Sequence record: PV261925.1
Length of the DNA stretch: 64,000 nucleotides
Strand: one strand, 5' to 3'
The notes below the pieces were generated by a model. It was not told where the DNA came from. It saw nothing but the letters and a program-made list of their open reading frames with translations, and searched no databases. Shown here piece by piece: positions 13,913-32,412 of this stretch (its first letter is position 1; each line of letters starts with the position of its first letter). The translations under genes were made by a program, and so were the position numbers.

Positions 13913-13949
13913 CAGTTATACATAGTATTGATATAGTAACTGTATTTAG

Positions 13950-15258: not shown

Positions 15259-15640
15259 AGAACAACAGGAGTATCTGAATAGTAAGATCAACAGATTTTC
15301 TGAAGAGGAAGTCAATCGTATCAAGGCTATGAGAGTCGAAGATGATATGATGTTGGAAATTATTGAGAAACTTCAGACTGAGGTTGAGGTAGTTCCTGAT
15401 GTTGGTAAGTATTTTACTTTCATCTATACAGCAAAGACACCCAGAGTTGAGTATGATAGGTTCCCTTTAGTTGCAGTCACTGGTTTATTCAGATGGGGAT
15501 TCAGAGGACTTAATTATCACTGGGGTGATTTCAGAAATTACACCTGGGAAGAACTACAGAGCAATCTATACAAAGTATATCCCATGGAACTGAAGACTCT
15601 TAGAGCCATTCCATATCAAAGTTTCACGATAAATAACTAA
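15251..15640 (+). CDS. gp2: DNA end protector gp2-like protein
   Basis: PDVGKYFTFIYTAKT...YDRFPLV...GFRGLNYHW. Confidence 0.75.
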   Translation: MDEEQQEYLNSKINRFSEEEVNRIKAMRVEDDMMLEIIEKLQTEVEVVPDVGKYFTFIYTAKTPRVEYDRFPLVAVTGLFRWGFRGLNYHWGDFRNYTWEELQSNLYKVYPMELKTLRAIPYQSFTINN

Positions 15641-15655
15641 AAGTATCCTAGTATA

Positions 15656-17143: not shown

Positions 17144-17811
17144 TGGCACAAAAATATTTTAGAAATATTCCTAACTTTGAGTATGTTGACAGGACCAAAG
17201 ACGGTCAGAACATCTCAGACTATACAGAAGTAAAGAACTTATTCAAGAGAGGTAAACTTAGAGAGGACATCTTCCAAGACCTCACATACTTCACCAAGTA
17301 TAAGGTGGTTGGTGATGAGAGACCCGATGAGGTTGCATATAGGATCTATGGTGATGCGAATCTTGATTGGATTGTGATGTTATCCAATAACATCATCAAC
17401 TTTGAGAATGAGTGGCCAATGGCTCAACAATCATTTGATAAGTATCTTCTTGATAAGTATGGTTCATATCCAAACATGTATCTCGATCATCATTATGAAA
17501 CCAATGAGGTGAGAGACAGTGAAGACAGAATTATTATTGAGAAGGGTTTGATAGTCCCAAGTGACTGGAGTATCACTTTCTATGATACTGGTCTCGGTCA
17601 ATTGGTAACTCGTTCCTCTGTCTATCCAGTTTCAAACTTTGAATACGAAGAGAGAATTCAAAACGATAAGAGAAATATATTCTTACTAAAAGATATCTAC
17701 GTGGGTCTAGTTATTGATGATGTAGAAACTGTCATGCCATACACACCTGGTTCAACACAGTATGTCTCAGACCGTCTTGTACGTGGTGAGAACATCAGAT
17801 TATACGAATAA
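17143..17811 (+). CDS. gp53: baseplate wedge subunit gp53
   Basis: YFRNIPNFEY...GDERPDEVAYRIYGDANLDWIVMLSNNI...WP. Confidence 0.9.
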   Translation: MAQKYFRNIPNFEYVDRTKDGQNISDYTEVKNLFKRGKLREDIFQDLTYFTKYKVVGDERPDEVAYRIYGDANLDWIVMLSNNIINFENEWPMAQQSFDKYLLDKYGSYPNMYLDHHYETNEVRDSEDRIIIEKGLIVPSDWSITFYDTGLGQLVTRSSVYPVSNFEYEERIQNDKRNIFLLKDIYVGLVIDDVETVMPYTPGSTQYVSDRLVRGENIRLYE

Positions 17812-17880
17812 AAAAAGTAATAGGGCAAAAAAATACCCCGATTTTTTTCGGGGCATTTTTGAAATCAAAGGCCGATTTTG
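17809..17880. repeat. ~70 bp intergenic element, copy 2, containing a bidirectional terminator-like hairpin between convergent gp53 and gp32
   Basis: AAAAAAATACCCCGA-TTTTT-TCGGGGCATTTTT; flanks match 182-253. Confidence 0.75.
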
Positions 17881-17883
17881 GTA

Positions 17884-18846
17884 TCAGGACTCAGCAAGCT
17901 TACTGAAGTAAGACATGGGGTCGTCGTCATCGTCTCCCTTACTGACAGTAATATCAGGAGAGTTGAAGTCAGAAGTTGTCTTTGAAGATTGATAGGAGTC
18001 TTCAAGCTTTCGCATGACCTCCTCTTCAGAGACAGTCTTTCGTTCTGTTGCTGCGTAGTTATCATACTCAGTTTCTTCCTCTACGGTTGATCGACGGGTG
18101 GACTTGTTGCCCAGTACATAATCAAGACGCTTCTTCAGTTCATCATAGGATTTGAACTGATCGGGTGCAGTGAAGGCAGTGAGTGAATACTGCTTCTTCC
18201 AGATTGCTTCCATCGCTTCATCGTCATCCAGGAGAGGAGACACACGATCGAACTCGGAACTATCATAGTTCCAGTAACCAGCAACCTTCTTCAGTTTGAG
18301 TTTGAAGTTGGCACCTTGCCAAAAGTCAAAGGGGTTGATAGGAGTTTCATCTTCGAATTCAGGTTGCATTGCTTCCATGATCTTGTCGAAGATCTTCTTA
18401 CCAAACTTGTACAGGAATACCTTACCTTCATTCTGAGGGTTGGCAGGGTCCTTGACCACGTAGATGTTTGCGTAGAAAGAAAGTTTACGCTTTTGTTTGC
18501 GAACGGTTTCCTTATCCGATTCGTTACCCGTGTTCCACAGTTCACGATTCAGTTCACCGATAGGATCCTTACCACCAATGGTAGTCAGGGAGTTTTCGAT
18601 GTACCAACCACCAGGACCTTGGAAGGCATGGGAGAACAGTTTCACCCAAGGGAGATCTTCTCCTTCGGGAGCAGGAAGGAAACGAATAACAGCATATCCG
18701 TTACCACTTTTATCCATCTCTGGTTTCCACAGTCGGTCATCGGCACCACCGCCGCCACCACCGTTTTGTTTCTCTACTTCTTTGACCAGTTTCTGTGTCA
18801 GAGAACCAAGAGAGGATTGTTTCTTTAGGTCTGAAAAATTTGACAT
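17884..18846 (-). CDS. gp32: single-stranded DNA-binding protein gp32
   Basis: DDRLWKPEMDKSGNGYAVIRFLPAP...HAFQGPGGWYIENSLTT; acidic C-terminal tail. Confidence 0.97.
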   Translation of the reverse strand: MSNFSDLKKQSSLGSLTQKLVKEVEKQNGGGGGGADDRLWKPEMDKSGNGYAVIRFLPAPEGEDLPWVKLFSHAFQGPGGWYIENSLTTIGGKDPIGELNRELWNTGNESDKETVRKQKRKLSFYANIYVVKDPANPQNEGKVFLYKFGKKIFDKIMEAMQPEFEDETPINPFDFWQGANFKLKLKKVAGYWNYDSSEFDRVSPLLDDDEAMEAIWKKQYSLTAFTAPDQFKSYDELKKRLDYVLGNKSTRRSTVEEETEYDNYAATERKTVSEEEVMRKLEDSYQSSKTTSDFNSPDITVSKGDDDDDPMSYFSKLAES

Positions 18847-18879
18847 TTGTTCCTTGTATTAGTTGTATTTGGTCTGTGT

Positions 18880-18910
18880 CCCAGATTTGGGTGGGGGTTC
18901 TGGGTCCCCC
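18880..18910 (-). promoter_or_regulatory. H-type pseudoknot in the gp32 leader (putative translational autoregulation operator)
   Basis: GGGGG-A-CCCAGA-A-CCCCC-ACCCAAA-TCTGGG: 5 bp S1, 6 bp S2, 33 nt upstream of the gp32 ATG. Confidence 0.7.
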
Positions 18911-18912
18911 AT

Positions 18913-18941
18913 AATATAACCCCTTTACGGGGAGGTGTCAA
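18913..18941 (-). promoter_or_regulatory. sigma70-type promoter upstream of gp32
   Basis: TTGACA-N17-TATATT. Confidence 0.6.
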
Positions 18942-19428
18942 CAGTGTATTTAGGGTGTTTCTTCCACCCCTTGTGTTGTTTTCTACCCTCTAAACCACGA
19001 CACACTTTATTCATACCACTTGGGTCTAAATTATTCTCAAGACAAAATTGTTTGAGGTTATGGACGACCACATACTGACCGTCAGGAGACTGTAGGTGGT
19101 AAGTTTTACTTGTATCAGGAGGATTGACCCTCCCCCTCTCTACACCCCCTCTAATGTTGTCTGATTGTGTTCCCCAGACCAGGTTGGTGTAATGATTGTT
19201 AGAGGGGTCGTCATCCATATGTTGAACCACAGGATAGTTCTCTGGATTAGGACAATACTTTTCTCCTACAAGTCTATGGACATAAAAACACCTGAACTTT
19301 CCATCATCACATTTCAGACAGACATGTTTGTAACCTTGACCCCTGTCATATTGTGTCATAACTTTGTTATCGTCTCTGATGACGATACCTTCAGGGGTCA
19401 CTGTGTATATTGATAAGTAATTCATCAC
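18925..19428 (-). mobile_element. free-standing HNH homing endonuclease (HNH_3 type, C-terminal DNA-binding domain)
   Basis: FYVHRLV...NPENYPVVQHMDDDPSNNHYTNLVWGTQSDN. Confidence 0.85.
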
Positions 19429-19586
19429 TCTTCCTCCATCAAGGGGACAAAGAAGTCCAGGAGGTCTTCTACCTCTCCATACTTCTCTTTCATCTCTTGA
19501 TAGTAACTATAAAGTTGATATTCTAACATGTTACAGGTCTCTATCTCTTCTTCGAGAGACCTGATACAATCTTTAATTCTTGACAT
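19425..19586 (-). CDS. small acidic hypothetical protein (53 aa)
   Basis: Hand-translated MSRIKDCIRSLEEEIETCNMLEYQLY...; stop overlaps the HNH start. Confidence 0.55.
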   Translation of the reverse strand: MSRIKDCIRSLEEEIETCNMLEYQLYSYYQEMKEKYGEVEDLLDFFVPLMEEE

Positions 19587-19719
19587 AAAAATAATCCATA
19601 ATAGGTTTCTAAGTCGGGGAGACTTATACTATGTATTATAGATTAGATTTTACTATTTGTCTATATGGTTTATCCCTACGGGATAAAGTTACGAAGTAAC
19701 TTTTCTTTTAGTAATCTTT

Positions 19720-19777
19720 ATAGTAACCTTATCTTCCAGGACAAACCTAGTCTACACATGGTTTGAGAAGTTGTCAA
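19720..19777 (-). promoter_or_regulatory. promoter + conserved leader element, copy A
   Basis: TTGACA-N17-TAGACT-AGGTTTGTCCTGGAAGATAAGGTTACT; near-identical to 30428-30485. Confidence 0.65.
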
Positions 19778-19882
19778 GAGGGACCAGGAGAGACTTATGG
19801 ATACTGTCTCCCCAGACTTTACCTATACCTCTCTCAGTCCCTCTCAGATGAGTTTAGAGACATCCCAGGTCTATACAGTTCG

Positions 19883-20218
19883 TCAGAGACTTTCGTCAAG
19901 GTGTTTCCTCATGTTGTCGATGATGTTGGTCATGTTACTGAAGACGTATGTCAGGTCCACGTCAGCAGGGAATCCGAGTTGACGTGCAGAAGCCATGATA
20001 CTCTCCTTCATCATCTGAGCTTCGGGATCATCAGATAAGCTCAGACGAGTGTAGAGAACCTGTTGTTTCTTTAACAGACTCTCTAACATTTCAACATGTT
20101 CCAACTTATCTTTGTTGGTCATTGATGCGAACGCAAACACGTTCTTATAGATCTCTTCTTGTAATTCGGAGATCTCTTTCATTTCCGTTTGAACTATTTC
20201 TGATTGAAAGAAACTCAT
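19883..20218 (-). CDS. conserved cyanophage hypothetical protein (DUF1825-like)
   Basis: MSFFQSEIVQ.EM.EI.ELQEEIY...RLSLSDDPEA. Confidence 0.7.
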   Translation of the reverse strand: MSFFQSEIVQTEMKEISELQEEIYKNVFAFASMTNKDKLEHVEMLESLLKKQQVLYTRLSLSDDPEAQMMKESIMASARQLGFPADVDLTYVFSNMTNIIDNMRKHLDESL

Positions 20219-20379
20219 TCTACTTCTGCTTCTTGATTGTTAGACTCTTCGATCTGTTCCAGAACGTCAATGGCACCGAGGATCTTAAGATACATCTCTC
20301 GTCCACCATCGATTTGTTGTTCGAGTTCAGCCTTTTGCTTTCTCAGATTTTCAAGCACGGTAGCATTATCAAGAGCCAT
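20215..20379 (-). CDS. small coiled-coil hypothetical protein (54 aa)
   Basis: Hand-translated MALDNATVLENLRKQKAELEQQ...LKILGAIDVLEQIE; fills the gap between gp59 and 19883-20218. Confidence 0.65.
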   Translation of the reverse strand: MALDNATVLENLRKQKAELEQQIDGGREMYLKILGAIDVLEQIEESNNQEAEVE

Positions 20380-20980
20380 TGATTATTACCTCCTTGAGGA
20401 TAGATCTAAATTTAAATACATCAATATGTATAAAGGAATCATACTTATCAATTCTCATCGATAAGAACTTCCACACAGGGTCATCCAGTTTACTATCGAA
20501 TTGTTTTTTGAATCCTAAGATCTTATTTAAGATCACTAAAGACTCAAGGGAAAGGTTCTTTCCCAGGTGTTCTTTGATGAGTTGAGGGTGACGAGTTCCC
20601 TCAATCTTGAACATCTCATCAAAGTTTTTACCAGAAAAAACATTCTCTACTTCTGATTTGAACGTATAAGATAGAGACTGAAGACGTTTTTTCCAATCGG
20701 TGTAGTTCTGTTCACCGTTCCTGACGATCTCACCAATCCACAGAGACTGAGGATCATCACAAGACACAAAATTACTGACAAAGAATTCAATAACTTCACT
20801 ATCATCTTTCTGCCGACTCAATTTTTCAAAAAAGAACCTGTCTTTACGTTTGTAAAAGGACTCTAATGATGCACGAGACTTACCACCATAACGATGGTAA
20901 TCATATTTTTCTTTTGTAAAGTGATTTTTCAATCCAAGATAACTCTTGTAAGTGTCGAAGGGTGTCACTTTAGGTATCAT
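20369..20980 (-). CDS. gp59: loader of gp41 DNA helicase gp59
   Basis: YLGLKNHFTKEKYDYHRYGGKSRAS.ESFYKRKDRFFFEKLSR. Confidence 0.85.
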   Translation of the reverse strand: MIPKVTPFDTYKSYLGLKNHFTKEKYDYHRYGGKSRASLESFYKRKDRFFFEKLSRQKDDSEVIEFFVSNFVSCDDPQSLWIGEIVRNGEQNYTDWKKRLQSLSYTFKSEVENVFSGKNFDEMFKIEGTRHPQLIKEHLGKNLSLESLVILNKILGFKKQFDSKLDDPVWKFLSMRIDKYDSFIHIDVFKFRSILKEVIINGS

Positions 20981-21246
20981 AAAGGTAGTTTCGCATGAGA
21001 TGTACGTTTCAATAGGTTGAGTTCCATAGCCTCAGCCTTAAGTTTTTCCTTCAAAGGTTTGGATATTAACTTAGGAATAGACTCAATGTCAATATTATTA
21101 CTCTCACAAAAGAAAACAATTGAGTCCATGTACTTCATGTCCTTGTTCTCTTTTGCAATCTTCTCAATCTCCTCCGAGAAAGTTCTACTATTATAGAACT
21201 TCTTTTCGATGAGTTGATCAACACTGAGTTCTTCAGATTTAGGCAT
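20977..21246 (-). CDS. gp33: late promoter transcription coactivator gp33
   Basis: FSEEIEKIA...YMDSIVFFCESNNIDIESIPKLISKPLKEKLKAEAMELN; start moved to MPKSEE. Confidence 0.85.
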   Translation of the reverse strand: MPKSEELSVDQLIEKKFYNSRTFSEEIEKIAKENKDMKYMDSIVFFCESNNIDIESIPKLISKPLKEKLKAEAMELNLLKRTSHAKLPL

Positions 21247-21904
21247 GTTGCTGTAGTTTGAATTCAACAAACTCGCTAATATATTCTGCGAGAAGGTTGA
21301 TGTACTTTCTCTTATCATACTGTTCATAGACTTCAACTTCTCCATTTTCACAAGACATAATGATGACAAATTTTTTGACCATAATACCAGTCATTTCATA
21401 GAGCATACAAGCATAGGCTGCACACTGTACATAATAATGTTCGATCCACTTTTCTGGTTTTGGTTTCTTACTTGTCTTGAAGTCAATGACAGCAAGTTCT
21501 CCATCATACTCAGCAATACAATCGACTGTTCCTGCAACACCTAACTCTTTACTATAAAGAGCCTGTTCGATTGCATGAATGTTGTCAATTTTGTCTAGAT
21601 CAGGTTTGGCTTGTTTAAAAAGGAACTCTGACAATGGTTGCACTGTCGGAAGTTCCTTATTCAACATATAGTTTTCAACCAGTGTGTGCATGTCAGTTCC
21701 ACGACTGGTTGCTGCCTTTGTGATCTTGTTTGCTTCTTCAACACCAACCCTTTTTCTCCACTTAGTGAAGATTTCTCGATTGTAGTGACTAATAATCGAT
21801 GTGATGGAAACTAATTTTTGTCCATCTGGAGTATCATAATACCTTACACCGTCAATCATCTCTCTATCGAGAGTTGGATAATCAATTTCAATGTGATTAA
21901 ACAT
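21239..21904 (-). CDS. PD-(D/E)XK exonuclease
   Basis: SITSII...ATSRGTDMH...GVAGTVDCIAEYDGELAVIDFKTS...YYVQCAAYA. Confidence 0.85.
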   Translation of the reverse strand: MFNHIEIDYPTLDREMIDGVRYYDTPDGQKLVSITSIISHYNREIFTKWRKRVGVEEANKITKAATSRGTDMHTLVENYMLNKELPTVQPLSEFLFKQAKPDLDKIDNIHAIEQALYSKELGVAGTVDCIAEYDGELAVIDFKTSKKPKPEKWIEHYYVQCAAYACMLYEMTGIMVKKFVIIMSCENGEVEVYEQYDKRKYINLLAEYISEFVEFKLQQHA

Positions 21905-22668
21905 TACATACCGAGTTCAAGTTTAGCAATGATGTACTCTTTAACAAGACCACTTCTACAGATATCTTCTGCATTGAATTCAATTGTATCAAAGGATGGC
22001 ATATTAGTCAAGATACGCATGAAGTCTGCGATACCATTCCTCTCATTCTGTTTGGTCAAATCGGACTGAGTTGCATCACCACAGAACATGATCTTAGAAT
22101 TCTCACCGATACGAGTGATCATTGAATCAAGTTCATGGAAGTTCAGGTTCTGGAACTCATCAACAATCACAATCACATTATCCAATGTGGTACCACGAAT
22201 GAATGATGTGGACCAGAAAGAAATAGTTCCCTGTGCCTTAAGATTGTTATACAACATCTCAAAGGATGCATCATCAGGCATCTCGAACATGTACTTGACC
22301 ATGTTCTTGTATGGAATCTGATACAAAGAAGACTTGTCCTCATGGTCACCAGGAAGGAAACCAATCTCTCTGGTCGGTACAAGAGACCTGACGATGTAGA
22401 TCTTCTCGTAGGGTGACTTGGGGTCTAAGACATCCAGAAGGGCGTTGTAGAGGGTGATAAAGGTCTTACCTGTACCAGCACACCCGTAGGCAACTAAGTT
22501 CTGTTGTTCCTTATACTTCTCAAAGAAAACTTCTTGGTTCTCTGTGATTGGTTCTACCTTCTTGATATAGTCAAGATTGATTGGTTTCTTTCTCTTCATT
22601 ACCCTATTGCTCATACCAAATGGAACTGGGTTAGTAGTTCCGACACCTGTCTTTTTCTTTGCCGGCAT
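21904..22668 (-). CDS. phoH: PhoH-like ATPase
   Basis: GCAGTGKT Walker A, IGFLPG, RGTTLDN..VIVDEFQN, GDATQSD; start moved to MPAKKK. Confidence 0.93.
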   Translation of the reverse strand: MPAKKKTGVGTTNPVPFGMSNRVMKRKKPINLDYIKKVEPITENQEVFFEKYKEQQNLVAYGCAGTGKTFITLYNALLDVLDPKSPYEKIYIVRSLVPTREIGFLPGDHEDKSSLYQIPYKNMVKYMFEMPDDASFEMLYNNLKAQGTISFWSTSFIRGTTLDNVIVIVDEFQNLNFHELDSMITRIGENSKIMFCGDATQSDLTKQNERNGIADFMRILTNMPSFDTIEFNAEDICRSGLVKEYIIAKLELGM

Positions 22669-22672
22669 AAAA

Positions 22673-22924
22673 TTAATCGTAGTGTTTGAGTGTTGAACCT
22701 GGTTGTTTCTTGGCTGCGCCAATTACATCTTTCCAACCTGGATGTTTGGTGTAGATCTTATTAAATGGATCACCCATTTCAACACCCAAACAAGGAGCGT
22801 TGTCGGGGGTATAAAAACGTTCCCAGTCGGGATTGTCCTCACGCCATTGATCCCATGCATGAATACTCATCTGGATCTCTTTCTCTTCACCAGTCTTCTT
22901 ATTTCTTACTGGATACGTTGCCAA
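22673..22924 (-). CDS. conserved T4-like hypothetical protein (FmdB-like neighbour of phoH)
   Basis: MATYPVRNKKTGE.KEI.MSI..WDQW..DNPDWER. Confidence 0.65.
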   Translation of the reverse strand: MATYPVRNKKTGEEKEIQMSIHAWDQWREDNPDWERFYTPDNAPCLGVEMGDPFNKIYTKHPGWKDVIGAAKKQPGSTLKHYD

Positions 22925-22954
22925 CTTATTTCTCCATTGTAATGTGTATATTTA

Positions 22955-23590
22955 TTACCACTCCAGAGCCTCTGAAATGACAGGGAATTGCTCCTTGAAG
23001 ATCTCCTTACAAGAGTTTGCAATGTCCATGTGTTCCTTCTGTGTACCATTGGCAGACCGAAGATCGATGTAATGAATCCAACTGCGAATTGAACCAGTCA
23101 TATACATTTTGGTTGGTGTTGCCAACGGCAATACAAAGCGAGCACATTCTTTGGCGACTCCTGCTTCCAACATCTGATTGTAAAGATTATATGAGGAACT
23201 AAACAGAGTGACCATCTGACGTTCCAAACGGTCAACAACTTCAGGATCAAGATCGTCAATACTATTCTGACGATTCTTAACGTCTTGACGCCTCAGTTCG
23301 GGGAGTTCAATCTCAGTAGACAAGAGATTAGTACTTGCATATCGTTGAGAGAACTCTTGGAATGTAAACGAACGATGCCGCAAGACTTGAGCAGCAAGAC
23401 CACGGGTAGTCTCAATCTCAAGAGTCATGAATGCTTGTTCAAAAATACTCCAGTGTTGATGTTTGATACAATATCTTAGGAGACCAGCAAAGTTCTCATT
23501 GTCCTGATTGTTTGGGTTAGACACACGTGCACAGTATGCAATGTGTTGCTCAGCATCAGGAGTGACTGAGATTAGTTTCGCTTGATTCAT
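22955..23590 (-). CDS. thyX: FAD-dependent thymidylate synthase
   Basis: HQHWSIFE, RHRSFTFQEFSQRY, ARFVLP, LRSANGTQKEH. Confidence 0.95.
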   Translation of the reverse strand: MNQAKLISVTPDAEQHIAYCARVSNPNNQDNENFAGLLRYCIKHQHWSIFEQAFMTLEIETTRGLAAQVLRHRSFTFQEFSQRYASTNLLSTEIELPELRRQDVKNRQNSIDDLDPEVVDRLERQMVTLFSSSYNLYNQMLEAGVAKECARFVLPLATPTKMYMTGSIRSWIHYIDLRSANGTQKEHMDIANSCKEIFKEQFPVISEALEW

Positions 23591-23711
23591 GTTTCTTTTG
23601 TGACTTTTGTTGTTTACGTTCCTTCTTTACCCTTTGTACATAAAGTCTCTCACCTTCTGTGAAAAGTTCTGGGTGTTTAAGGATGTACTTGATTGCTTTC
23701 TTTGTTTTCAT
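23556..23711 (-). CDS. small basic hypothetical protein
   Basis: MKTKKAIKYILKHPELFTEGE...; ORF track with adjusted start. Confidence 0.55.
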   Translation of the reverse strand: MKTKKAIKYILKHPELFTEGERLYVQRVKKERKQQKSQKKHESSETNLSHS

Positions 23712-23919
23712 GATTGAAGTATGCGTTGAAATATGCAACGATTCCATTACTTAACTTGTTCCCCTGAGAGATCCAAGTGTCAACACACTCATAGATATCT
23801 TTTGTTGAATATGATGTTTTGTCTATACGACCACTACCATATCTATTTAACAAAACTTTAAGACATTGTTCACGGAGTTTCATTCTCTCCTCCGTGTACC
23901 TCCAATCCTCATTCGTCAT
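23677..23919 (-). CDS. hypothetical protein
   Basis: MTNEDWRYTEERMKLRE...IYECVDTWISQG; ORF track with adjusted start. Confidence 0.6.
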   Translation of the reverse strand: MTNEDWRYTEERMKLREQCLKVLLNRYGSGRIDKTSYSTKDIYECVDTWISQGNKLSNGIVAYFNAYFNHENKESNQVHP

Positions 23920-24151
23920 CTTCGAATACCTCATCGTAGTCAGGGAGTGGAGGAAGTCTTTCCTCCGTCTTTACGTATGCACCAGGATCAGAATACACCT
24001 CCGATTCCAATGCGTCAAGTAGAAGTCTGAGATTTCTGATGATTAATTTAAGATTGTCTTTTTCCATAAAAAAAGGGGACCTATGTCCCCAGTCTAACAG
24101 ATTATTGAACAAGTGACAAGTCACTTGACGTAAGTGCGTCCACGGTAGCAA
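23909..24151 (-). CDS. hypothetical protein (likely start MEKDNLKLIIRNL)
   Basis: ORF track; the N-terminal extension overlaps a terminator hairpin, so the true start is probably later. Confidence 0.55.
   Translation of the reverse strand: MLPWTHLRQVTCHLFNNLLDWGHRSPFFMEKDNLKLIIRNLRLLLDALESEVYSDPGAYVKTEERLPPLPDYDEVFEDDE
24066..24092 (-). terminator. rho-independent terminator after the DUF4278 gene
   Basis: GGGGAC-ATAG-GTCCCC followed by a T run on the minus strand. Confidence 0.7.
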
Positions 24152-24288
24152 AATGTTCCGTGGGTTTCATTTTTCTCTTCACAGTGTACATCATACTCAA
24201 CACCACGATATGCAGTGTGAGAAATCTGTGCGTCGTGAAGTGCAGATGCTTTGTTGATCTGCTTCTTGATCATGTTCAGTGTGTTCAT
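24121..24288 (-). CDS. DUF4278-family small protein (55 aa, two YRG motifs)
   Basis: Hand-translated MNTLNMIKKQINKASALHDAQISHTAYRGVEYDVHCEEKNETHGTFCYRGRTYVK; SD AGGAG. Confidence 0.8.
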   Translation of the reverse strand: MNTLNMIKKQINKASALHDAQISHTAYRGVEYDVHCEEKNETHGTFCYRGRTYVK

Positions 24289-24299
24289 GAGTTTACTCC

Positions 24300-24538
24300 T
24301 GAAATACTAGGGATTTTTACCCCGTTCCTTCAGTCGTGTGCGTCCCTGATACACCTCATTCCATGACTGCCGACAAGTTTTTTAAGAATTTGAGTCTTAG
24401 ACTTATCAGAAAGATATGGATCTTCCATAACCACATCTATAACTTCCTTCACCGACTCACAGGACATTGGATGTTCTGAAGCAGTTGCAGGAGTGAATAG
24501 AAGTAGAAGGAGTATGAAGTATTTCATGGGATGAACGA
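24300..24538 (-). ncRNA. Downstream-peptide (glutamine-II riboswitch)-like aptamer, split by an ORF in its P2 loop
   Basis: 5' half TCGTTCATCCC (24538-24528); 3' half GGGACGCACACGACTGAAGGAACGGGG...TTTCAG; P1 CGTTC/GAACG, P2 TCCC/GGGA, pseudoknot CTGAAG/TTTCAG next to the SD. Confidence 0.6.
24330..24527 (-). CDS. small secreted/membrane protein (65 aa, signal peptide, two Cys)
   Basis: MKYFILLLLLFTPATASEHPMSC...MRCIRDAHD. Confidence 0.7.
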   Translation of the reverse strand: MKYFILLLLLFTPATASEHPMSCESVKEVIDVVMEDPYLSDKSKTQILKKLVGSHGMRCIRDAHD

Positions 24539-25111
24539 TTAGAGTGATTTTTTCCAGCGACGAATAGAAGTATGAGATGTTTGATAAACTTCTGCAAGTT
24601 TTCTAATGGGTAAAGATAAAATAGATTCATCTTTACTTACATCTTTTAGAAAGTCATCATACATTTTACCTCTGGTATATGTTATGGATTTAGTAGTAGC
24701 GTATTCTTTTGGATTACGACTTCTACCTTTCCACCACCCAGAAGGAATGTCATTCTCATAAACTACTCGTTCATTTTTACCGTCAGTAATACGAACTTTA
24801 CCAAAACAGGGATTGCCTCTACCAATTCGTTCTCCCTGAGAACAGAAAGAAAATGAAGAAGATGTTTGCTTTGCCCTATTAGCAAAGTGAGGATTAGTAT
24901 CAACTTGATAAAACTCATGGAGTTTTACTTCCGCTTCAACTGCTTCCTCTCTCGTAGCATGTTCGGTAAGAATGATTTTAGAGGAAGGATTAAATGTTTT
25001 GTCTCCATAGGAACCAAAATAATTATCCTCCACTGGATTACACTCACATCCTCTGCTACCAATGTAGCCTCTCCCAAAGGGTTCGTAAGAGTAGTAAGTG
25101 TAATAAATCAT
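24539..25111 (-). mobile_element. free-standing GIY-YIG (Seg-like) homing endonuclease
   Basis: YYTYYSYE..GRGYIGSR...REEAVEAE...FAN; C-terminal NUMOD-like GKVRITDG...GWWKGR and HTH segments. Confidence 0.8.
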
Positions 25112-25125
25112 TCTAATTGCTTACG

Positions 25126-25170
25126 CTCCGTTCCGCGACTTACTTGCGTCCAGTTACCTGGATGAACGAC
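25126..25170 (-). ncRNA. glnA (glutamine-I riboswitch)-like aptamer
   Basis: GTCGTTCA-TCCAG-GTAA-CTGGA-CGCAAGTAAGTCGCG-GAACG: P1 CGTTC/GAACG, P2 hairpin, GCAAGTAA junction. Confidence 0.55.
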
Positions 25171-25176
25171 AGGTCT

Positions 25177-25205
25177 ATTATAGACCACTGTAGTTATTTA
25201 GTCAA
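25177..25205 (-). promoter_or_regulatory. sigma70-type promoter driving the riboswitch-like leader
   Basis: TTGACT-N17-TATAAT, ending 7 nt before the aptamer. Confidence 0.75.
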
Positions 25206-25392
25206 GGGGCCCGTACTCTTCGCCCTCTTTGATCAGTTGGGACACATAGTTTTCTGTCCCATCCATGGTCTTGACTTCGAAGATCGTGGACTTCTGATAC
25301 TTCTTGATCTTTTTATATTTTTTGACGAGGGCTTGAACCTGATCTTGGTTCATGTCCAAACCTTCGAACTTAATATCAAATCCGTTACTCAT
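25198..25392 (-). CDS. hypothetical protein (64 aa)
   Basis: ORF track; coupled to the upstream ORF. Confidence 0.65.
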   Translation of the reverse strand: MSNGFDIKFEGLDMNQDQVQALVKKYKKIKKYQKSTIFEVKTMDGTENYVSQLIKEGEEYGPLD

Positions 25393-25670
25393 TTTCTTTT
25401 CTTCTCGGACTTCTTATCACCACCCCAGAGTTTGGGATTGATTCGACCTTCAGTTTGTGTCATGTTCTTGAAATCACTACGGTAGTTATCCCAATAATGA
25501 TCAAAGATATCTACCTTCTTCTTTGAAGTTACAATATCAAACTTTGTCATACCATCTTGAAGATACTCAACAAGATAAGCTGTGTATGGGAGACTCTTGT
25601 CTTGTGCAAGTGATGGGTCACAATCCTGATGGAGAATTCTTATACTATCACTCAAGATCGACCACCCCAC
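25389..25670 (-). CDS. conserved cyanophage hypothetical protein
   Basis: IRILHQDCDPSLAQDKSLPYTAYLVEY...FDHYWDNY...TEGRINPKLW. Confidence 0.7.
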   Translation of the reverse strand: MGWSILSDSIRILHQDCDPSLAQDKSLPYTAYLVEYLQDGMTKFDIVTSKKKVDIFDHYWDNYRSDFKNMTQTEGRINPKLWGGDKKSEKKRK

Positions 25671-26125
25671 TCAATATCGGGATAGGCTTTACGAACCACA
25701 TCATCAGTGATCTTGTACTGAGCACCAAGACGTTTGTCTTTTACAAGACACAAGATCGATGCTTCCTCAGGATGAAGACCTTCGAGCATTTGAATAAACA
25801 TAGACTCTCTACGTGTCTTAGAGAGACCGTCATTACCACCTTTTACAAAGTGATACAGATTCCTACACTCCTTACGAAGTGAGGTGTGATCGGTGCCAAG
25901 AGGTGCCTCATTCTTATTAAAAGGTACTTCACCCTCAGGGAGCATTGACAGAACACTGTCATCAAAGTTCCAAATCAGAATAGATGTGAGTGCATCACAT
26001 CGATGTTCTTGTAAGATTTCAATCTTTTTTGCTTTCGTTCTTTGTTTAGATACCAACTCAAGAATCTCATGAACAAATGGGTTGGGAGGTAATTTAGTTT
26101 TCACAGTGAAAGATTTAGTTGCCAT
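25652..26125 (-). CDS. conserved T4-like hypothetical protein
   Basis: LPPNPFVHEILELVSKQRTKAKKIEIL...RRESMFIQMLEGLHPEEA. Confidence 0.75.
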   Translation of the reverse strand: MATKSFTVKTKLPPNPFVHEILELVSKQRTKAKKIEILQEHRCDALTSILIWNFDDSVLSMLPEGEVPFNKNEAPLGTDHTSLRKECRNLYHFVKGGNDGLSKTRRESMFIQMLEGLHPEEASILCLVKDKRLGAQYKITDDVVRKAYPDIEWGGRS

Positions 26126-26164
26126 TGTATGTTCAATTTAGTTTAGAATATTTATTTGGTGGTG

Positions 26165-26386
26165 TCAATCTTCAGACTCAAAGTCCTCTAGGCTATTTTC
26201 AAACCTAACAGCTAAAACATCATCTGGAATAATTTGTCCATTTTCGTCAAACATCTCTGGATGTGTTGGAATAAATGTTGAATTCCTTTCGATTACATAT
26301 TCCTTTAAAAGATATCCAATCACTCCTCCCACCAAAAGGAACATGATTGAAATGACCGTGGACAATGTAAGTGTGACTGCTAACAT
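26165..26386 (-). CDS. small membrane protein
   Basis: N-terminal TM helix; HPEMFDENGQIIPD. Confidence 0.7.
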   Translation of the reverse strand: MLAVTLTLSTVISIMFLLVGGVIGYLLKEYVIERNSTFIPTHPEMFDENGQIIPDDVLAVRFENSLEDFESED

Positions 26387-26387
26387 C

Positions 26388-26624
26388 TTAGCTCTCCTTT
26401 TTTCTTATGTCAAACTGAATGTCTAAGAAAAAATGGAACTCTCTTCGAAGGAAGGAGACCATCTTTCCAAACTTTACTTGAAAAGTTTTAGGTGGTTCCC
26501 TCCTCTTTTTATTTCTGAGTAATAATTCAAATCCCCTATTCATCTTAGGAGACTCGTTGTCATTATTTAGAGACTCTTCGTTTTCTTCCAGGTCGTTTAT
26601 CATTTTTATACCTCTCTGCGTCAT
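26388..26624 (-). CDS. hypothetical protein (start uncertain)
   Basis: ORF track; fills the gap on the operon strand. Confidence 0.5.
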   Translation of the reverse strand: MTQRGIKMINDLEENEESLNNDNESPKMNRGFELLLRNKKRREPPKTFQVKFGKMVSFLRREFHFFLDIQFDIRKKES

Positions 26625-26913
26625 GAAGAATATTGGCGAGATAATTCTTAATCTTTCTTGCCTCTGGTTTACCTAGGTGACCGTAACCCTCACGTAATTG
26701 TTTGTGAACCTCGTCACTACCACCCTCCAGATACCCTTCAAGGTCCAACACAAGGTTCTTTACCTCAGTGGCAGTACAACTCATCAGGAACTCCTCTACG
26801 ACAGTTCTAGAGACCTTACTGTCTTTGAGATATGCATACATGTCAAGCATATATTTACCTTCGAAGACGTAATCAATTGTCTTCTCTACTACTTCGTATA
26901 GTTCCTCTACCAT
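26563..26913 (-). CDS. conserved cyanophage hypothetical protein
   Basis: LREGYGHLGKPEARKIKNYL. Confidence 0.7.
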   Translation of the reverse strand: MVEELYEVVEKTIDYVFEGKYMLDMYAYLKDSKVSRTVVEEFLMSCTATEVKNLVLDLEGYLEGGSDEVHKQLREGYGHLGKPEARKIKNYLANILHDAERYKNDKRPGRKRRVSK

Positions 26914-27152
26914 TACACCAACTTATTCTCCTTCAAATATTTAACAGTTTCCATGCATCCACCAATAGTTTTACCATCAACTGATACCTGAGGGAAGGTA
27001 GAACCTTGTCCAAAGTCAGCATAAAATTGATTTTTATCAAAGTCTCTACCCAATTTGAGTTCAACATACTGAAGTTCAGCAAGTTGTAATGCAGAAACTA
27101 CCTTGGTGCAATAAGGACAACCGTTCTTTGAGTAAACAGTGAAGACTTTCAT
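26913..27152 (-). CDS. nrdC: glutaredoxin
   Basis: YSKNGCPYC...TFPQV..DGKTIGG. Confidence 0.9.
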   Translation of the reverse strand: MKVFTVYSKNGCPYCTKVVSALQLAELQYVELKLGRDFDKNQFYADFGQGSTFPQVSVDGKTIGGCMETVKYLKENKLV

Positions 27153-27236
27153 AGTAAAATTAATAGTGGGATTGAGATAGTTAGAATTGCTATTAGGAAA
27201 CCCCCTGCCATATTTAACAGGGGGCGTGTACTGTGT

Positions 27237-27404
27237 TCAGTCATCTTTCTTTTTACGTTTACCCGTGATCTTATCGTAGTCATACTTCATAGCCATAACG
27301 AGCCATGATGATGACAACGAATCTGGACCATGATCGAGAAGATATATCTGACGTTCAGATAACTTCTTCATCTTCTTGTACTCTTCTCGCCAAGTATTAT
27401 CCAT
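27237..27404 (-). CDS. small hypothetical protein (55 aa)
   Basis: Hand-translated MDNTWREEYKKMKKLSERQIYLLDHGPDSLSSSWLVMAMKYDY. Confidence 0.6.
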   Translation of the reverse strand: MDNTWREEYKKMKKLSERQIYLLDHGPDSLSSSWLVMAMKYDYDKITGKRKKKDD

Positions 27405-27416
27405 GTATATATCTAG

Positions 27417-27442
27417 ACAAAAAAAGAGGGGTTGACCCCTCT
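27417..27442 (-). terminator. terminator after psbD
   Basis: AGAGGGG-TCAA-CCCCTCT followed by a T7 run. Confidence 0.7.
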
Positions 27443-27467
27443 ATAGTATCACGTTGTCAAGTTCTTG

Positions 27468-28529
27468 TCAAAGAGCATTGCCACGTGGGAGTACTTCCTC
27501 AGGAAAAACAAAGTTTTCATGTGGCTGATCGACTCCTGCCATCCATGCACGAATACCTTCGTTCAAGAGAATGTTCTTAGTATAAAAAGTCTCAAACTCT
27601 GGATCCTCCGCCGCACGAATCTCCTGAGATACAAAGTCGTAAGCACGAAGATTAAAAGCGAGTCCAATAATACCGATAGAAGCAGTCCAGAGACCCATGA
27701 CGGGAACAAAGAGCATAAAGAAATGCAACCAACGCTTGTTACTAAAAGCAATACCGAAAATCTGTGACCAGAAACGGTTCGCAGTAACCATCGAGTAAGT
27801 CTCCTCCTCTTGTGTACTATCAAAAGCTTTGAAAGTATTCGCTTGTTCGCCATCTTCGTAGAGTGTGTTTTCGACTGTCACACCGTGAATGGCTGAGAGT
27901 AAAGCACCACCAAGGATACCTGCGACTCCCATCATGTGGAAGGGGTTGAGTGTCCAGTTATGAAATCCTTGTAGAAAAAGTAGGAATCGGAAGATTGCCG
28001 CGACACCAAAACTCGGCGCAAAGAACCAACTGGATTGTCCAAGTGGATAGATGAGAAATACAGAAGTGAATACGGCAATAGGACCTGAAAAAGCAATCGC
28101 ATTGTAGGGACGGATACCGACGAGACGAGCAATTTCAAACTGACGTAACATGAAACCTATGAGAGCAAATGCTCCGTGGAGTGCCACGAAATTCCAGAGT
28201 CCCCCAAGTTGGACCCAACGGACGAAATCTCCCTGAGCTTCAGGACCCCATAAGAGTAAGAGGCTATGTCCGAGAGCATCAGCAGGAGTAGAAACAGCAG
28301 CAGTGAGAAAGTTAGCCCCCTCAAGATATGAACTCGCCAGGCCATGGGTGTACCAACTGGTAGCAAAGGTGGTTCCTGTAAGCCAACCGCCAATAGCGAG
28401 ATAAGCTGTAGGGAAAAGGAGAATGCCAGACCAACCGACAAAAACAAACCGATCACGCTTAAGCCAATCATCGAGAACATCGAACCAGCCTCCCCCTTGT
28501 TTAGGAATAGAAAGTGTAGATGAAGCCAA
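27468..28529 (-). CDS. psbD: photosystem II D2 protein
   Basis: [21 protein letters not shown]...[10 protein letters not shown]; TTG start with a GAGG SD. Confidence 0.98.
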
Positions 28530-28561
28530 AAGTTTAACCTCTTAGAATACTTATCATATTT

Positions 28562-28590
28562 AGTTTACACTTCTTTACAAAAGGGGTCAA
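28562..28590 (-). promoter_or_regulatory. psbD promoter with an HLR1-like direct repeat
   Basis: TTGACC-N17-TAAACT; plus-strand TTTACACT-TC-TTTACAAA at 28564-28581. Confidence 0.55.
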
Positions 28591-28647
28591 GAGTAGAACT
28601 ACTTACTCTTTTTCTTTTGAGGACGATACAACTGGGGCCAGGTGTCT

Positions 28648-29091
28648 CTAATAATTTCCGCTAGTTTGTAAGGTGTCTGTGTGGTTATCATTGAGATAGT
28701 TAATCATCCTTGAAAGAGTATCTATATTATCACCAATGTGACCAAGGGCAACGTTACATTTACCACAAAGTAGACCTCTTACCTTGCCTGTGGTGTGACA
28801 ATGGTCAACATGAAATCTCTTACCATTTGAAAATGTGGTGTCGTCTGTTCCACATATTGCACACTTATAATTTTGTCTTGTGAGCATATCATCATATTCA
28901 TTGAGAGTAATACCATACTTACTCTTCAAATCCTTCTCTCTCTTTCTCTCTGGAGAGTATCTCTCTTTCTTTACCTTAGCCTGACAGGGTTTACAGTGAG
29001 AAGAATATTTTCTACTTCCATCAACTCTCTTTCCCTTAGGAGAGAATGACTTGAACTCTTTTGTTTCTCCACATTTATTACAGACGCGCAT
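28648..29091 (-). mobile_element. endonuclease VII-type HNH homing endonuclease between psbA and psbD (F-CphI-like)
   Basis: C..C...C..C N-terminus; YGITLNEYDDML..QNYKCAICG...FHVDHCHTTGKVRGLLC..CN..LG...DN; same position as F-CphI in S-PM2. Confidence 0.85.
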
Positions 29092-29118
29092 AAAAAAAGA
29101 GGAGTGTTAACTCCTCTT
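29092..29118 (-). terminator. psbA terminator abutting the endonuclease ATG
   Basis: AAGAGGAG-TTAACA-CTCCTCTT plus T run, then ATG. Confidence 0.7.
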
Positions 29119-29148
29119 ATTTAACATATTATTCAGTTTTTGTCAACT

Positions 29149-30228
29149 TCAACCAATTGAAGGAGCAGTGAGAGCTACAGGAGTAGACTCGGCAGCTGCA
29201 AGGTCAAGCGGGAAATTGTGTGCGTTCCTTTCGTGCATCACCTCCATCCCCAGACCAGCGCGGTTCAATACGTCAGCCCAAGTGTTGAGGACTTTACCCT
29301 CAGAAGATTGGATTGACTGATTGAAATTAAAGCCGTTCAAGTTGAATGCCATAGTTGACACGCCGAGGGCGGTAAACCAGATGCCGATGACAGGCCATGC
29401 TGCCAGGAAGAAGTGGAGCGAACGTGAGTTGTTAAAAGAGGCATACTGAAAGATAAGTCTTCCAAAGTAACCGTGGGCAGCCACGATATTATATGTTTCC
29501 TCTTCTTGACCAAACTTGTAACCGTAGTTCTGTGACTCGTTCTCAGTGGTTTCACGAACCAGTGAGGAGGTAACCAGTGAACCATGCATTGCGGAGAACA
29601 GTGAACCACCGAAGACACCAGCGACACCCAGCATGTGGAAGGGGTGCATCAGGATGTTGTGTTCTGCCTGGAAGACAAGCATGTAGTTGAAGGTACCAGA
29701 GATACCCAGGGGCATACCATCAGAGAAAGAACCTTGACCGAAAGGATAGACGAGGAAGACTGCGGATGCAGCTGCAACAGGTGCAGAGTAAGCAACACAG
29801 ATCCAAGGACGCATACCCAGTCTGTATGAAAGTTCCCACTCACGACCCATGTAGCAGAAGACGCCGATGAGGAAGTGGAAGACTACCAGTTGATAAGGAC
29901 CACCATTGTAGAGCCATTCATCCAGAGATGCGGCTTCCCAAATGGGGTAGAAGTGAAGACCAATTGCGTTGGAAGAAGGAACAACTGCACCAGAGATGAT
30001 GTTGTTACCGTACATCAGAGAACCAGCGACTGGTTCACGAATGCCATCGATGTCCACTGGGGGAGCAGCGATGAACGCAGTAATGAAACAAACGGTTGCT
30101 GCCAACAGAGTTGGGATCATCAGCACACCGAACCAACCGACATACAGACGGTTATTTGTGGACGTGACCCAGGAACAGAAGGATTCCCAGGTAGAGGCGC
30201 CTTGTTGGCGCGAAAGAGTTGCGGACAT
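29149..30228 (-). CDS. psbA: photosystem II D1 protein, intronless
   Basis: Continuous ORF ...[14 protein letters not shown]...[14 protein letters not shown]; start moved to MSATLSR. Confidence 0.98.
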
Positions 30229-30231
30229 TGT

Positions 30232-30345
30232 TTTGAACAAAAAAGTAAGACCATCAGGGAAATGGTGGAGTTACTATTTCCTCGTACCCTTAACGAGGAT
30301 ATGAAAGACGTGTTTATACTCCCTAGAGGTCTTGGTTTAAGGGGA
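30232..30345 (-). ncRNA. structured psbA 5' leader (PhotoRC-II-like)
   Basis: Hairpins CCTCGT-TAAGGGT-ACGAGG and ACCAT-TTCCCTG-ATGGT; wording matches my recollection of cyanophage psbA leaders. Confidence 0.55.
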
Positions 30346-30380
30346 GTTTAGGTAAGTCAGGAAACCCTGACCTGTCCATG

Positions 30381-30414
30381 TATTTATAATAACCTACTTT
30401 GGTGGTCCTGTCAA
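30381..30414 (-). promoter_or_regulatory. overlapping early (sigma70) and T4 late promoters of psbA
   Basis: TTGACA-N17-TATTAT, and TATAAATA at 30388-30381. Confidence 0.75.
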
Positions 30415-30427
30415 CTCTCTTAGCCAC

Positions 30428-30485
30428 TTGACAGACTGTCCATTCTTGAATAGAATAGGCTTGTCCAGGATGATAAGGGTTTACT
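30428..30485 (+). promoter_or_regulatory. promoter + conserved leader element, copy B
   Basis: TTGACA-N17-TAGAAT-AGGCTTGTCCAGGATGATAAGGGTTTACT. Confidence 0.65.
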
Positions 30486-32412
30486 TAGGTAATCTTTTAG
30501 CTTTTTCTACTTTTTTATCAATAGCTTTAATACCAGTCCTTGGCATTGCTTTAGCACTAATAGGATCTAGTTTATTAAATCTTTGAGAAGTCTTCTCACC
30601 TGTTACAAGATCAGGATGAAGTCCTTTGATCTGAGGTGGTGGTGGATTCTCTGGGAACTCAGGTTTAATATCTTTATCTTTAAAGAATGCTTGTGGATTT
30701 TTAAGTTTTCTTTCCACAATCATTTCTCCTTCTGGTTCATAAGAATTTTTTTGATGTTGTCTATTTGTTTTCCATTTGTTTCTTACTCTCTGTCTATTTT
30801 TAACAGCATTTGCTCTTCTTTCTTCTGCTCTCTTAATTCTTTCAGGATCACCACTAGCATTTGCTGCTTCAAGTTCAGCAGTTGCATCTTGTAATTGTTT
30901 ATCAGCTGCAGCAGTTTCTTGTTTTTGTTGTTCACTGGTTCCTCTTTCATAGTCTTGAGCATCTCTTTCAGCTCTTCCCATGTCAGGTTCCCAATTATTG
31001 ACTAACCATTCTGCTGCATCATATGACAGATTAGTTACTGCCATAACTCCAGCAACACCCAATCCAATAAGTCCTGAAATAGCTTCAGCACTTAAACCAA
31101 GAAGTCCAAGTTCACCCATGGCTTGATCCATAGCAGTTTGATATAATTCTGTACCATATGGATTCTTAGAAAGTGGTGTCAAGTCTTGACTGTAATCAAC
31201 CTCTGCTGCTTGTTCCCATGATGGTGCTTGAGAAGGATCAGTAAACTCTCTGTCGGCATTAGTACCAGGGAAGGAGTCACCAAATTTATTAAGAAGATAT
31301 TGGTCACTTGCATTCATCATCTCTCTGAGTTTTTTAATCTTCTGTTCATTTGATAATTTTGAGAACTCGCCAGTCCTTACAAACGATGAAGACTCTGGAT
31401 TATCAAGAGGAACAAATACTGTGAGGGGAGTTTTTCTTTTCAGACCAATATTAGATACTGTAAATGTTCTTGCATAATTTCCATTTAAATCAGAAAAATT
31501 ATCTTTAATCCAATCCCACAAATACAATCTATCTGCTTCTGTATGACCACCCGTCTCACCAGAGACAGGCCAGGGATCATATCCACCATATTCTCTTCCA
31601 CTATAAAAATCCCAAATCAATAAAGTTATAGAAGTACTTTTATAATCATCATCTGCCCAGTCATTATTTACAATGTCCCATATTCTCGCTGCAGATGCTG
31701 TGTTCGCAACGGTTGCACCCCAAAAATTTCTACCCATTGCAAGTCTTGAAAGATAATCAGTTCTATAATTTTCATTATCAGAACTATCGAAAGTATCTAC
31801 TTTGAATTGAAAGCTAGTATTTTTTTTTCTAGCCTCTGGTGGTAGTTCAAAATTATATTCTCCACTTGACAAAAGAGACCCTACAATAGTTCCAAAATCA
31901 AAAGAAGTATCAAACTCACCCCCATCCCCATTATATCCATAAAATTGAACTTTTAAAGGGTGAGCAGGTAGTGGTGCATTATTTCCTGTTCCAACTGTTA
32001 ATCTAAACGAGAGGTGACTTAAAAGACTTGTATCATAAGTAGTAGTTGTACCCCATTGATACCAATTCTGCCCGTATTGTCCACCACCTGGTTCTACTGT
32101 TCCAAATTTAATTTCACCATCAGCCACCAATCCAAATTGAGATTGCATTGCATCATCAGTAGCAGGGACATCTGTAAGAACAGTATCACCCTCTGATGGA
32201 AGAGTTGATGCATAGGTGAATGCCTGAGTGGTCATTCCTTCATCTAGATCAAATCTCCAGTTGGAATATAAAGGACTATTTTTGTTTAATAATGTTTCTA
32301 ATTCTTTTTTACGACACAGTTCTTCTATACGCTTCTCTTCCTGAAGCTTCCATGTATTTCTTTTGACATCCGCCATGGATACATGACGAAGAATTGAATT
32401 ATAAGACGCCAT
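30481..32412 (-). CDS. large hypothetical protein (643 aa), possible internal virion protein
   Basis: ORF track; YSNWRFDLDE and SYEPEGEMIVE motifs; acidic beta-rich middle and coiled-coil segments. Confidence 0.7.
   Translation of the reverse strand: MASYNSILRHVSMADVKRNTWKLQEEKRIEELCRKKELETLLNKNSPLYSNWRFDLDEGMTTQAFTYASTLPSEGDTVLTDVPATDDAMQSQFGLVADGEIKFGTVEPGGGQYGQNWYQWGTTTTYDTSLLSHLSFRLTVGTGNNAPLPAHPLKVQFYGYNGDGGEFDTSFDFGTIVGSLLSSGEYNFELPPEARKKNTSFQFKVDTFDSSDNENYRTDYLSRLAMGRNFWGATVANTASAARIWDIVNNDWADDDYKSTSITLLIWDFYSGREYGGYDPWPVSGETGGHTEADRLYLWDWIKDNFSDLNGNYARTFTVSNIGLKRKTPLTVFVPLDNPESSSFVRTGEFSKLSNEQKIKKLREMMNASDQYLLNKFGDSFPGTNADREFTDPSQAPSWEQAAEVDYSQDLTPLSKNPYGTELYQTAMDQAMGELGLLGLSAEAISGLIGLGVAGVMAVTNLSYDAAEWLVNNWEPDMGRAERDAQDYERGTSEQQKQETAAADKQLQDATAELEAANASGDPERIKRAEERRANAVKNRQRVRNKWKTNRQHQKNSYEPEGEMIVERKLKNPQAFFKDKDIKPEFPENPPPPQIKGLHPDLVTGEKTSQRFNKLDPISAKAMPRTGIKAIDKKVEKAKRLPK

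Follow-up and report, generated by a model that had tools for sequence, protein, structure and literature searches.

The locus considered here raises the question of how a cyanophage can carry psbA, the gene for the photosystem II protein D1, without an intron and directly beside the gene for an endonuclease that resembles F-CphI, an enzyme whose substrate is taken from psbA itself. Of the photosynthesis genes that marine phages have taken from their hosts, psbA is the most widespread; its mosaicism in these phages has long been noted, without a clear driver. In the cyanophage S-PM2, F-CphI and a group I intron in psbA together make up what is called 'collaborative homing' (Zeng, Bonocora and Shub, 2009, as cited in PMC6083498). 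A first-pass annotation of the DNA analysed here, made from its letters alone, had proposed that the 3' third of psbA was silently recoded, that this tract was co-converted and travels with the nuclease, and that its silent substitutions take the place of the intron. We hypothesise that positions 28596-29500 are a free-standing homing-endonuclease cassette, which probably entered an RN05-S-like ancestor by double-strand-break repair and would owe its immunity to silent sites.

The window is a stretch of 64,000 nucleotides from sequence record PV261925.1. From 28540 to 30300 it is 100% identical, at equal coordinates, to the phage RB11-B, in whose record the psbA sequence has a 100% nucleotide match annotated as D1; over the same stretch S-H68 is 100% and S-B05 99.8% identical. 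All three are T4-like cyanophages, and two of the three were isolated on Synechococcus sp. MW02. Two sister phages, RN05-S and S-B43, carry psbA without an adjoining nuclease gene. The features of the locus are collected in Table 1.

Table 1. Features in and around psbA, in coordinates of the window.
Feature	Position	Strand	Evidence and remarks
PhotoRC-II RNA motif	30266-30359	-	Rfam RF01717, 75.7 bits, E = 1.8e-12; just upstream of psbA
psbA (photosystem II D1), 359 codons	29149..30228	-	Open reading frame, ATG at 30228; Pfam Photo_RC, E = 3.8e-90
Replaced cassette, 905 bp	28596..29500	-	blastn blocks and mismatch map against RN05-S
Synonymously diverged psbA tract, codons 243-359 and stop	29149..29500	-	75 of 352 positions differ from RN05-S
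Counterpart of the S-BM4 60-bp F-CphI substrate	29198..29257	-	60-mer from PMC6083498 Table S3, located in S-BM4
E333-R334, read as GAA AGG	29227..29232	-	GAG CGT in RN05-S, S-B43 and all intron-bearing alleles
psbA terminator-like hairpin, 9 pairs, followed by a T-run	29097..29118	-	Terminator scan; centroid hairpin on folding
Free-standing EndoVII/DHHRN-type (putative homing) endonuclease gene, 147 aa	28648..29091	-	Pfam PF02945, E = 2.6e-26
psbD (D2), conserved flank downstream of the cassette	27468..28529	-	Pfam

The deposited psbA coding sequences of the two sisters (972 nt in RN05-S) begin with an internal Met (MIPTLL...) that lies 108 nt after the RB11-B start, and the 36 codons before it are intact and identical. 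S-B43 has, in addition, another rearrangement breakpoint at the extreme 3' end of psbA within the same clade: in its record (MN018232, 3073-4578) the gene stops resembling its relatives at codon 352, within the C-terminal extension usually removed by cleavage, and continues in frame for about 113 further codons into glycosyltransferase-like sequence, with psbD not adjacent. A cytosine C5-carboxymethyltransferase and DNA hypermodification are among the features that a 2025 paper describes for this phage (PMC12783734).

The suspicion that the 3' part of psbA is foreign came from its codons, and these are as the first-pass annotation described them. Phe is written TTC in each of its first 16 codons, which reach to codon 211, and TTT in six of the remaining 11 (codons 239, 255, 260, 265, 285 and 300; Fisher p = 0.0016); R334, read directly, is AGG at 29229-29227, and the atypical codons named (GGA, AGA, GGG, AGG and CCG) are all found. 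Comparison with RN05-S is a far stronger test than codon counting. Against this sister, psbA shows 5 differences in the 728 bp of 29501-30228 and 75 in the 352 bp of the tract (Fisher p = 4e-33), with the final tract difference at 29500 and the next one at 29631. When S-B43 is added in a three-way alignment, columns 1-800 (window 30300-29501) contain 6 differing positions in total, and from column 801 nearly every third base of the window differs from both RN05-S and S-B43. The predicted breakpoint near 29520 therefore exists and is 20 bp out of place, the true upstream edge being at 29500: the first TTT codon (29514-29512) is common to the nuclease-free relatives, and so lies outside the tract, and the remaining five TTT codons are TTC in RN05-S. 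Similarly, the co-converted tract, put at about 370 bp, is indeed continuous with the nuclease gene, but the replaced DNA does not end at the psbA stop codon and extends past it, across spacer and nuclease gene, to 28596. The shift in the codons of the tract consists of two-fold codons that are less biased and four-fold codons that end more often in G. A lower GC3 was considered as the cause of the odd codons and rejected: the tract stands at 0.53, its RN05-S counterpart at 0.54 and the 5' part of psbA at 0.525.

On the far side of the nuclease gene, identity to RN05-S is back at 28595, and 19893-28595 is 99.67% identical (29 mismatches in 8703 bp), including a psbD with 4 nucleotide differences and a D2 protein equal at 353 of 353 residues. 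On the psbA side, 29501-31383 has 9 differences. Between 28595 and 29501 the sequence of the window is either 21% divergent from RN05-S or absent there. At this place RN05-S has 478 bp, made up of its native tract and a 126-bp psbA-psbD spacer, which is wholly replaced in the window; the cassette instead contains the psbA 3' tract, the terminator-like hairpin, the nuclease gene and 52 bp past the nuclease stop codon. The cassette is one replaced block with sharp edges, and the DNA around it, some 11.5 kb, is at least 99.5% identical to RN05-S. The nuclease gene is present in RB11-B, S-B05 and S-H68 and absent between psbA and psbD of RN05-S, where the flanks are at least 99.5% identical, and co-conversion of the psbA tract with the nuclease gene is well supported.

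The window differs from RN05-S at other places as well. At 18925-19428, on the minus strand, a 167-aa HNH-type endonuclease reading frame lies directly downstream of the gene for a gene 32-like single-stranded-DNA-binding protein (17884-18846). It falls within about 1 kb (18897-19893) that has no counterpart at that position in RN05-S and that divides a block of 93% identity (10890-18897) from the block of 99.67% identity (19893-28595). It may be another free-standing nuclease gene that sits at a genetic-exchange boundary, and recalls SegG at T4 gene 32. Two clusters of differences, both in near-identical surroundings, look like more mosaic patches: one of 16 differences in about 350 bp at 21398-21752, and one of 13 differences in 50 bp at 31384-31433, within a 643-aa reading frame (30481-32412) and just before a non-aligning stretch at 31439-32168.

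Although the tract is so divergent in nucleotides, it encodes the same protein. The D1 proteins of the window and RN05-S match at 359 of 359 residues, with no amino-acid change in the 117 tract codons, and hence all 75 tract differences are synonymous; 68 fall on third, 6 on first and 1 on second codon positions. Changes affect 70 of the 111 degenerate tract codons and include multi-step switches, for example Arg CGT to AGG and Ser AGC to TCA. Four-fold sites differ at 27 of 41 (the saturation expectation being 0.68), two-fold sites at 20 of 40 and six-fold codons at 20 of 24; synonymous sites between the RB11-B and RN05-S tracts are saturated, that is, fully randomised. Within the tract, two 23-nt runs are identical to RN05-S, at approximately 29262-29284 and 29394-29416, and cover SEGKVLN (codons 313-320, part of a clade-specific loop) and HFFLAAW (codons 272-279); they may be due to chance or be short conversion patches.

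The protein encoded by the tract is a rare one. It has clade-specific features, namely I282, the loop IQSSEGK and the ending APSIG, and occurs in only 4 of 512 psbA-bearing phage records (RB11-B, S-B05, S-H68 and RN05-S), the next best having five differences. Of the 1415 allele pairs whose tracts differ at 70-79 positions, RB11-B with RN05-S is the only one without an amino-acid change, the median being 10. An unchanged protein at 43-58 silent differences is, however, found between alleles of a commoner D1 type. This exactness is a point against homing with a foreign donor, since the D1 of the recipient clade would not be expected of a random donor. It might instead be proposed that the tract was not imported at all: it would be the clade's own psbA, recoded on the spot or by selection, for example through break-associated mutagenesis beside the nuclease or through selection for lost homology. 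The unchanged protein over fully randomised silent sites, its restriction to four records and the uniqueness of the pair would all fit such an origin, as would the lack of a tract donor in the collections searched. However, more than one substitution per silent site would have had to accumulate within 352 bp while both sides stayed at least 99.5% identical, the nuclease gene is plainly an acquired insertion, and the pairs of the commoner D1 type indicate that a donor of the same type is possible. We know of no phage mechanism for such local silent recoding, and we regard this origin as very unlikely.

The direction of the exchange can be read from other alleles. Those nearest in the psbA 5' part (87-90% identical) are 83-87% identical to the RN05-S tract and 75-79% identical to that of the window; the RN05-S tract follows the 5' relationships and the window tract does not, and the window tract is therefore the imported one. 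Donors were sought in phage records, IMG/VR, JGI metagenomes and GTDB genomes. For the tract, blastn against the phage collection gave no more than 81.5% identity outside its own lineage, IMG/VR alleles no more than 81% nucleotide identity, and intron-bearing alleles with their exons joined no more than 77.5%; for the nuclease, identity reached at most 50% over most of its length in IMG/VR and at most 53% in JGI metagenomes. An origin of the tract from a host was rejected, cellular genomes giving at most 79% nucleotide and 93% amino-acid identity. The protein-identical tract is most simply read as coming from a donor that has escaped sampling and belongs to a deep branch of the same D1 type. 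It is also conceivable, if quite unlikely, that the tract is a long-lived second allele of the clade's D1 C-terminus, protein-identical and silently saturated, in which the loss of homology is itself functional. If so, the lost homology would lock the nuclease gene to its immune target site and keep nuclease-free genomes from repairing the nuclease away, and homing nucleases would maintain deeply diverged, protein-identical psbA allele classes in one recombining phage population.

The nuclease itself has an intact catalytic motif. As the first-pass annotation had it, an F-CphI-like enzyme adjoins psbA: the reading frame is intact in three isolates and its product is an EndoVII/DHHRN protein that aligns with F-CphI along its full length, the Cys-rich N-terminal part included, at 46% identity by BLASTP over residues 2-133 of 147 (E = 3e-31), with the Pfam domain Recombination endonuclease VII at residues 53-134. 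Its C-terminal half has the EndoVII motif (CX2C, then D-H-x-H, then R, then CX2C-N): residues C77/C80, D96, H97, H99, R105, C109/C112 and N113 are all present and align with C84, D101, H102, R110 and N118 of F-CphI, and all catalytic residues of F-CphI and EndoVII are kept. In F-CphI, mutating the counterparts of these residues abolished activity or binding (PMC6083498). The best matches among solved structures are Hpy99I (over its full length) and T4 EndoVII; Hpy99I is a restriction enzyme and belongs to the endonuclease clade, not the resolvase clade (PMC6083498). Expression may be modest: the ATG abuts the T-run of the psbA hairpin and no Shine-Dalgarno sequence is evident before it on reading the sequence, and this start right after a T-run, with no evident ribosome-binding site, suggests low expression that would depend on read-through.

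It is less clear that the enzyme shares the target of F-CphI, because its identity to F-CphI is 46% and its position in trees is ambiguous. In a free quick tree of 135 relatives (149 columns) it does not join the large psbA-adjacent clade and is placed with nucleases of other genomic settings, and it is about as similar (some 48%) to nucleases of T7-like enterobacterial phages as to F-CphI. One could therefore suppose that the block is a homing cassette aimed at another target, elsewhere in psbA codons 243-359 or in the native psbA-psbD spacer, and that the changes at codons 333-335 are hitch-hiking; the N-terminal half, likely the DNA-binding part, is the least conserved, and the native spacer has been completely replaced. 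Against this, forcing the nuclease into the F-CphI clade gives a tree that the AU test does not reject and that even outscores the free one (p = 0.91, on 149 columns only), the gene stands right after psbA, as in 46 other psbA-adjacent relatives, and RB11-B has silent changes at two positions, -4 and +12 from the intron junction, that recur across the family. Another target is improbable in our view, and we continue with the F-CphI site as the likeliest place of cleavage.

At that site the comparison with S-PM2 is direct. The S-PM2 intron, 212 nt long, had been placed near codon 334/335 and maps exactly between R334 (CGT) and N335 (AAT), corresponding to 29227/29226 in the window; S-PM2 and eight metagenomic loci have an insert of 207-212 nt at this junction. 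In RB11-B psbA is, as was claimed, a single uninterrupted reading frame, and no group I intron was found in it, either from the reading frame or by Rfam over 27000-31000. Residues H332, E333 and H337, with the nearby D342 and A344, are ligands of the manganese cluster of photosystem II, and because these ligands are encoded there, only silent escape would be possible at codons 333-335. Precisely such changes are seen. With a slash at the intron position, RN05-S and S-B43 read GAG CGT/AAT, as at the S-PM2 exon junction, and the window reads GAA AGG/AAC, so the site does differ by silent changes from the canonical homing site kept in the nuclease-free sisters. The 60-bp F-CphI substrate from S-BM4 is centred on the same junction (PMC6083498), and of the 60 positions around it, 15 distinguish the window from RN05-S and 9 from the S-BM4 substrate. 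The site is consistent with immunity through silent changes, and we infer that the nuclease may be active, may cut at or near codon 334 and may be blocked there by these changes.

We then consider uncultured phage alleles, gathered by nuclease-based and D1-based scans of IMG/VR and JGI metagenomes. In these, 47 distinct EndoVII-type nucleases lie directly downstream of psbA, mostly beside an intronless gene. Association statistics used de-duplicated alleles and excluded a set selected by its site (AGR at R334); their p-values, here and below, are indicative only, because the alleles are interrelated and phage groups do not share one codon usage. E333-R334 is written GAG-CGY in 2 of 17 nuclease-linked intronless alleles against 36 of 57 nuclease-free alleles (Fisher p = 2e-4), and in the D1-ascertained set only, in 2 of 10 against 33 of 54 (p = 0.03). 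All 7 distinct nuclease-plus-intron alleles have it, reading GAG CGT/AAT. At silent positions, alleles without a nuclease and intronless alleles linked to one contrast most at -4, +9, +12 and +15, counted from the junction; of these RB11-B has the changes at -4 and +12, together with AGG. Identity to the nearest nuclease-free relative also drops more from the 5' to the 3' part of psbA in nuclease-linked alleles (median -0.083 against -0.046; Mann-Whitney p = 1e-4). Taken over the family, the statistics thus lend support to immunity at silent sites.

AGR at R334 was tried as a diagnostic mark and rejected, at least 120 IMG/VR contigs having AGR, mostly as AGA in AT-rich phage alleles. In some loci of the same survey, psbA with an adjacent EndoVII-type nuclease is interrupted in other places, in addition to the 334/335 intron or replacing it: after codon 60 in three IMG/VR loci (L012, L015 and L034), after codon 298 in L027 and at several places in L013.

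These data bear on a third alternative, in which ordinary homologous recombination brought the 3' tract and spacer from another phage, the nuclease being a passenger, inactive or with another target, and the silent differences being non-protective. Intragenic recombination of psbA is established in cyanophages, reportedly through work by Zeidner in 2005 (cited in PMC3037559) and Sullivan in 2006, and some nuclease-free psbA pairs (L259/L234 and L243/L266) likewise diverge towards the 3' end. Moreover, GAG-CGY is missing from 21 of the 57 nuclease-free alleles too, and a variant site is thus not specific to nuclease carriers. Yet tract and nuclease gene were replaced as a single unbroken block whose two ends both lie in near-identical DNA, the nuclease is intact with all of its catalytic residues in three isolates, and nuclease-linked alleles as a group differ significantly from the others both in their 3' drop, which is larger, and in the sequence of the site. 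We consider a mere passenger unlikely, and return to the homing cassette.

The linkage of nuclease and tract is not restricted to the isolates. Sampled words of the cassette were matched in at least 19 metagenome runs, which belong to at least 9 studies. Four of these runs, each of a separate study, have Logan contigs that lie over the nuclease gene or extend from it into the tract. Two of these contigs, of 399 nt and 538 nt, have no differences from the cassette; one of 494 nt, reaching 29241, has 2, and one of 679 nt, reaching 29322, has 11. These contigs show that the linkage of nuclease and tract exists in the environment. At 80% likeness, metagenome contigs were swamped by psbA and psbD of unrelated cyanophages and cyanobacteria. 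That the tract travels with the nuclease, as the first-pass annotation put it, rests on one lineage and on near-identical metagenomic contigs.

On this basis the following sequence of events may be proposed. The nuclease would have cut a nuclease-free psbA allele in its 3' part, most likely at the F-CphI site in codons 333-335. The break would have been resected and then repaired off a nuclease-bearing genome, so that some 350 bp of donor psbA were copied in along with the nuclease gene. The D1 protein cannot change at this site, and the donor allele would therefore differ only at silent positions. These differences (GAA AGG AAC for GAG CGT AAT, and others nearby) would spare the carrier from cutting itself, and so play the role that the group I intron has in S-PM2. 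With 21% divergence the tract offers almost no homology for crossovers, and the nuclease gene and its protected site would therefore be inherited as one block.

Two known kinds of system are combined in this proposal. Like F-CphI in S-PM2, the RB11-B nuclease is a free-standing DHHRN enzyme encoded between psbA (upstream) and psbD in a T4-like cyanophage; the two align along their full length at 46% with identical catalytic residues, and in both phages the psbA of the carrier departs from the canonical sequence exactly at codons 333-335. S-PM2 differs in having an extra reading frame between the nuclease and psbD and, above all, in having the intron, whereas RB11-B psbA has none, and any protection must therefore come from silent substitutions and not from interruption of the site. 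Intronless homing is known from T-even phages, with SegF at gene 56 and SegG at gene 32 (Belle, 2002; Liu, 2003; both as cited in PMC3037559) and MobE at nrdB (PMC2790892). As in those cases, an optional nuclease gene lies between conserved genes and is present or absent in close relatives, a few hundred bases of the adjacent gene are co-converted, and the target is polymorphic in the carrier, which is known to spare the carrier there and would presumably do so in RB11-B. In contrast, the T-even enzymes are of GIY-YIG or HNH type and that of RB11-B is EndoVII/DHHRN, the host gene in RB11-B is an auxiliary photosynthesis gene, the tract changes no amino acid, and the event is read from genomes, not from crosses. 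A nuclease gene at a sharp change of identity between close phages has also been described by Barth, Dunham and Seed (2023; PMC10448857), although there the nuclease flanks a divergent island of more than 10 kb, whereas in RB11-B it lies inside a divergence island of 905 bp. RB11-B is, as far as its genome tells, a case of T-even-like intronless homing by an F-CphI-family enzyme at the F-CphI locus, without the intron of collaborative homing. It is an ordinary kind of homing event and an unusually clean case.

The phages of this clade that grow on one Synechococcus strain (MW02), and that over about 11.5 kb differ essentially only by the nuclease cassette, provide a clean natural experiment. 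The locus opens nuclease-driven gene conversion of a photosynthesis gene to direct testing. EndoVII-type nucleases adjoin intronless psbA in many uncultured phages, with recurrent silent changes around the intron-insertion site, and because these changes recur in nuclease-linked intronless alleles, silent-site immunity may be the common state and the intron of S-PM2 the special one.
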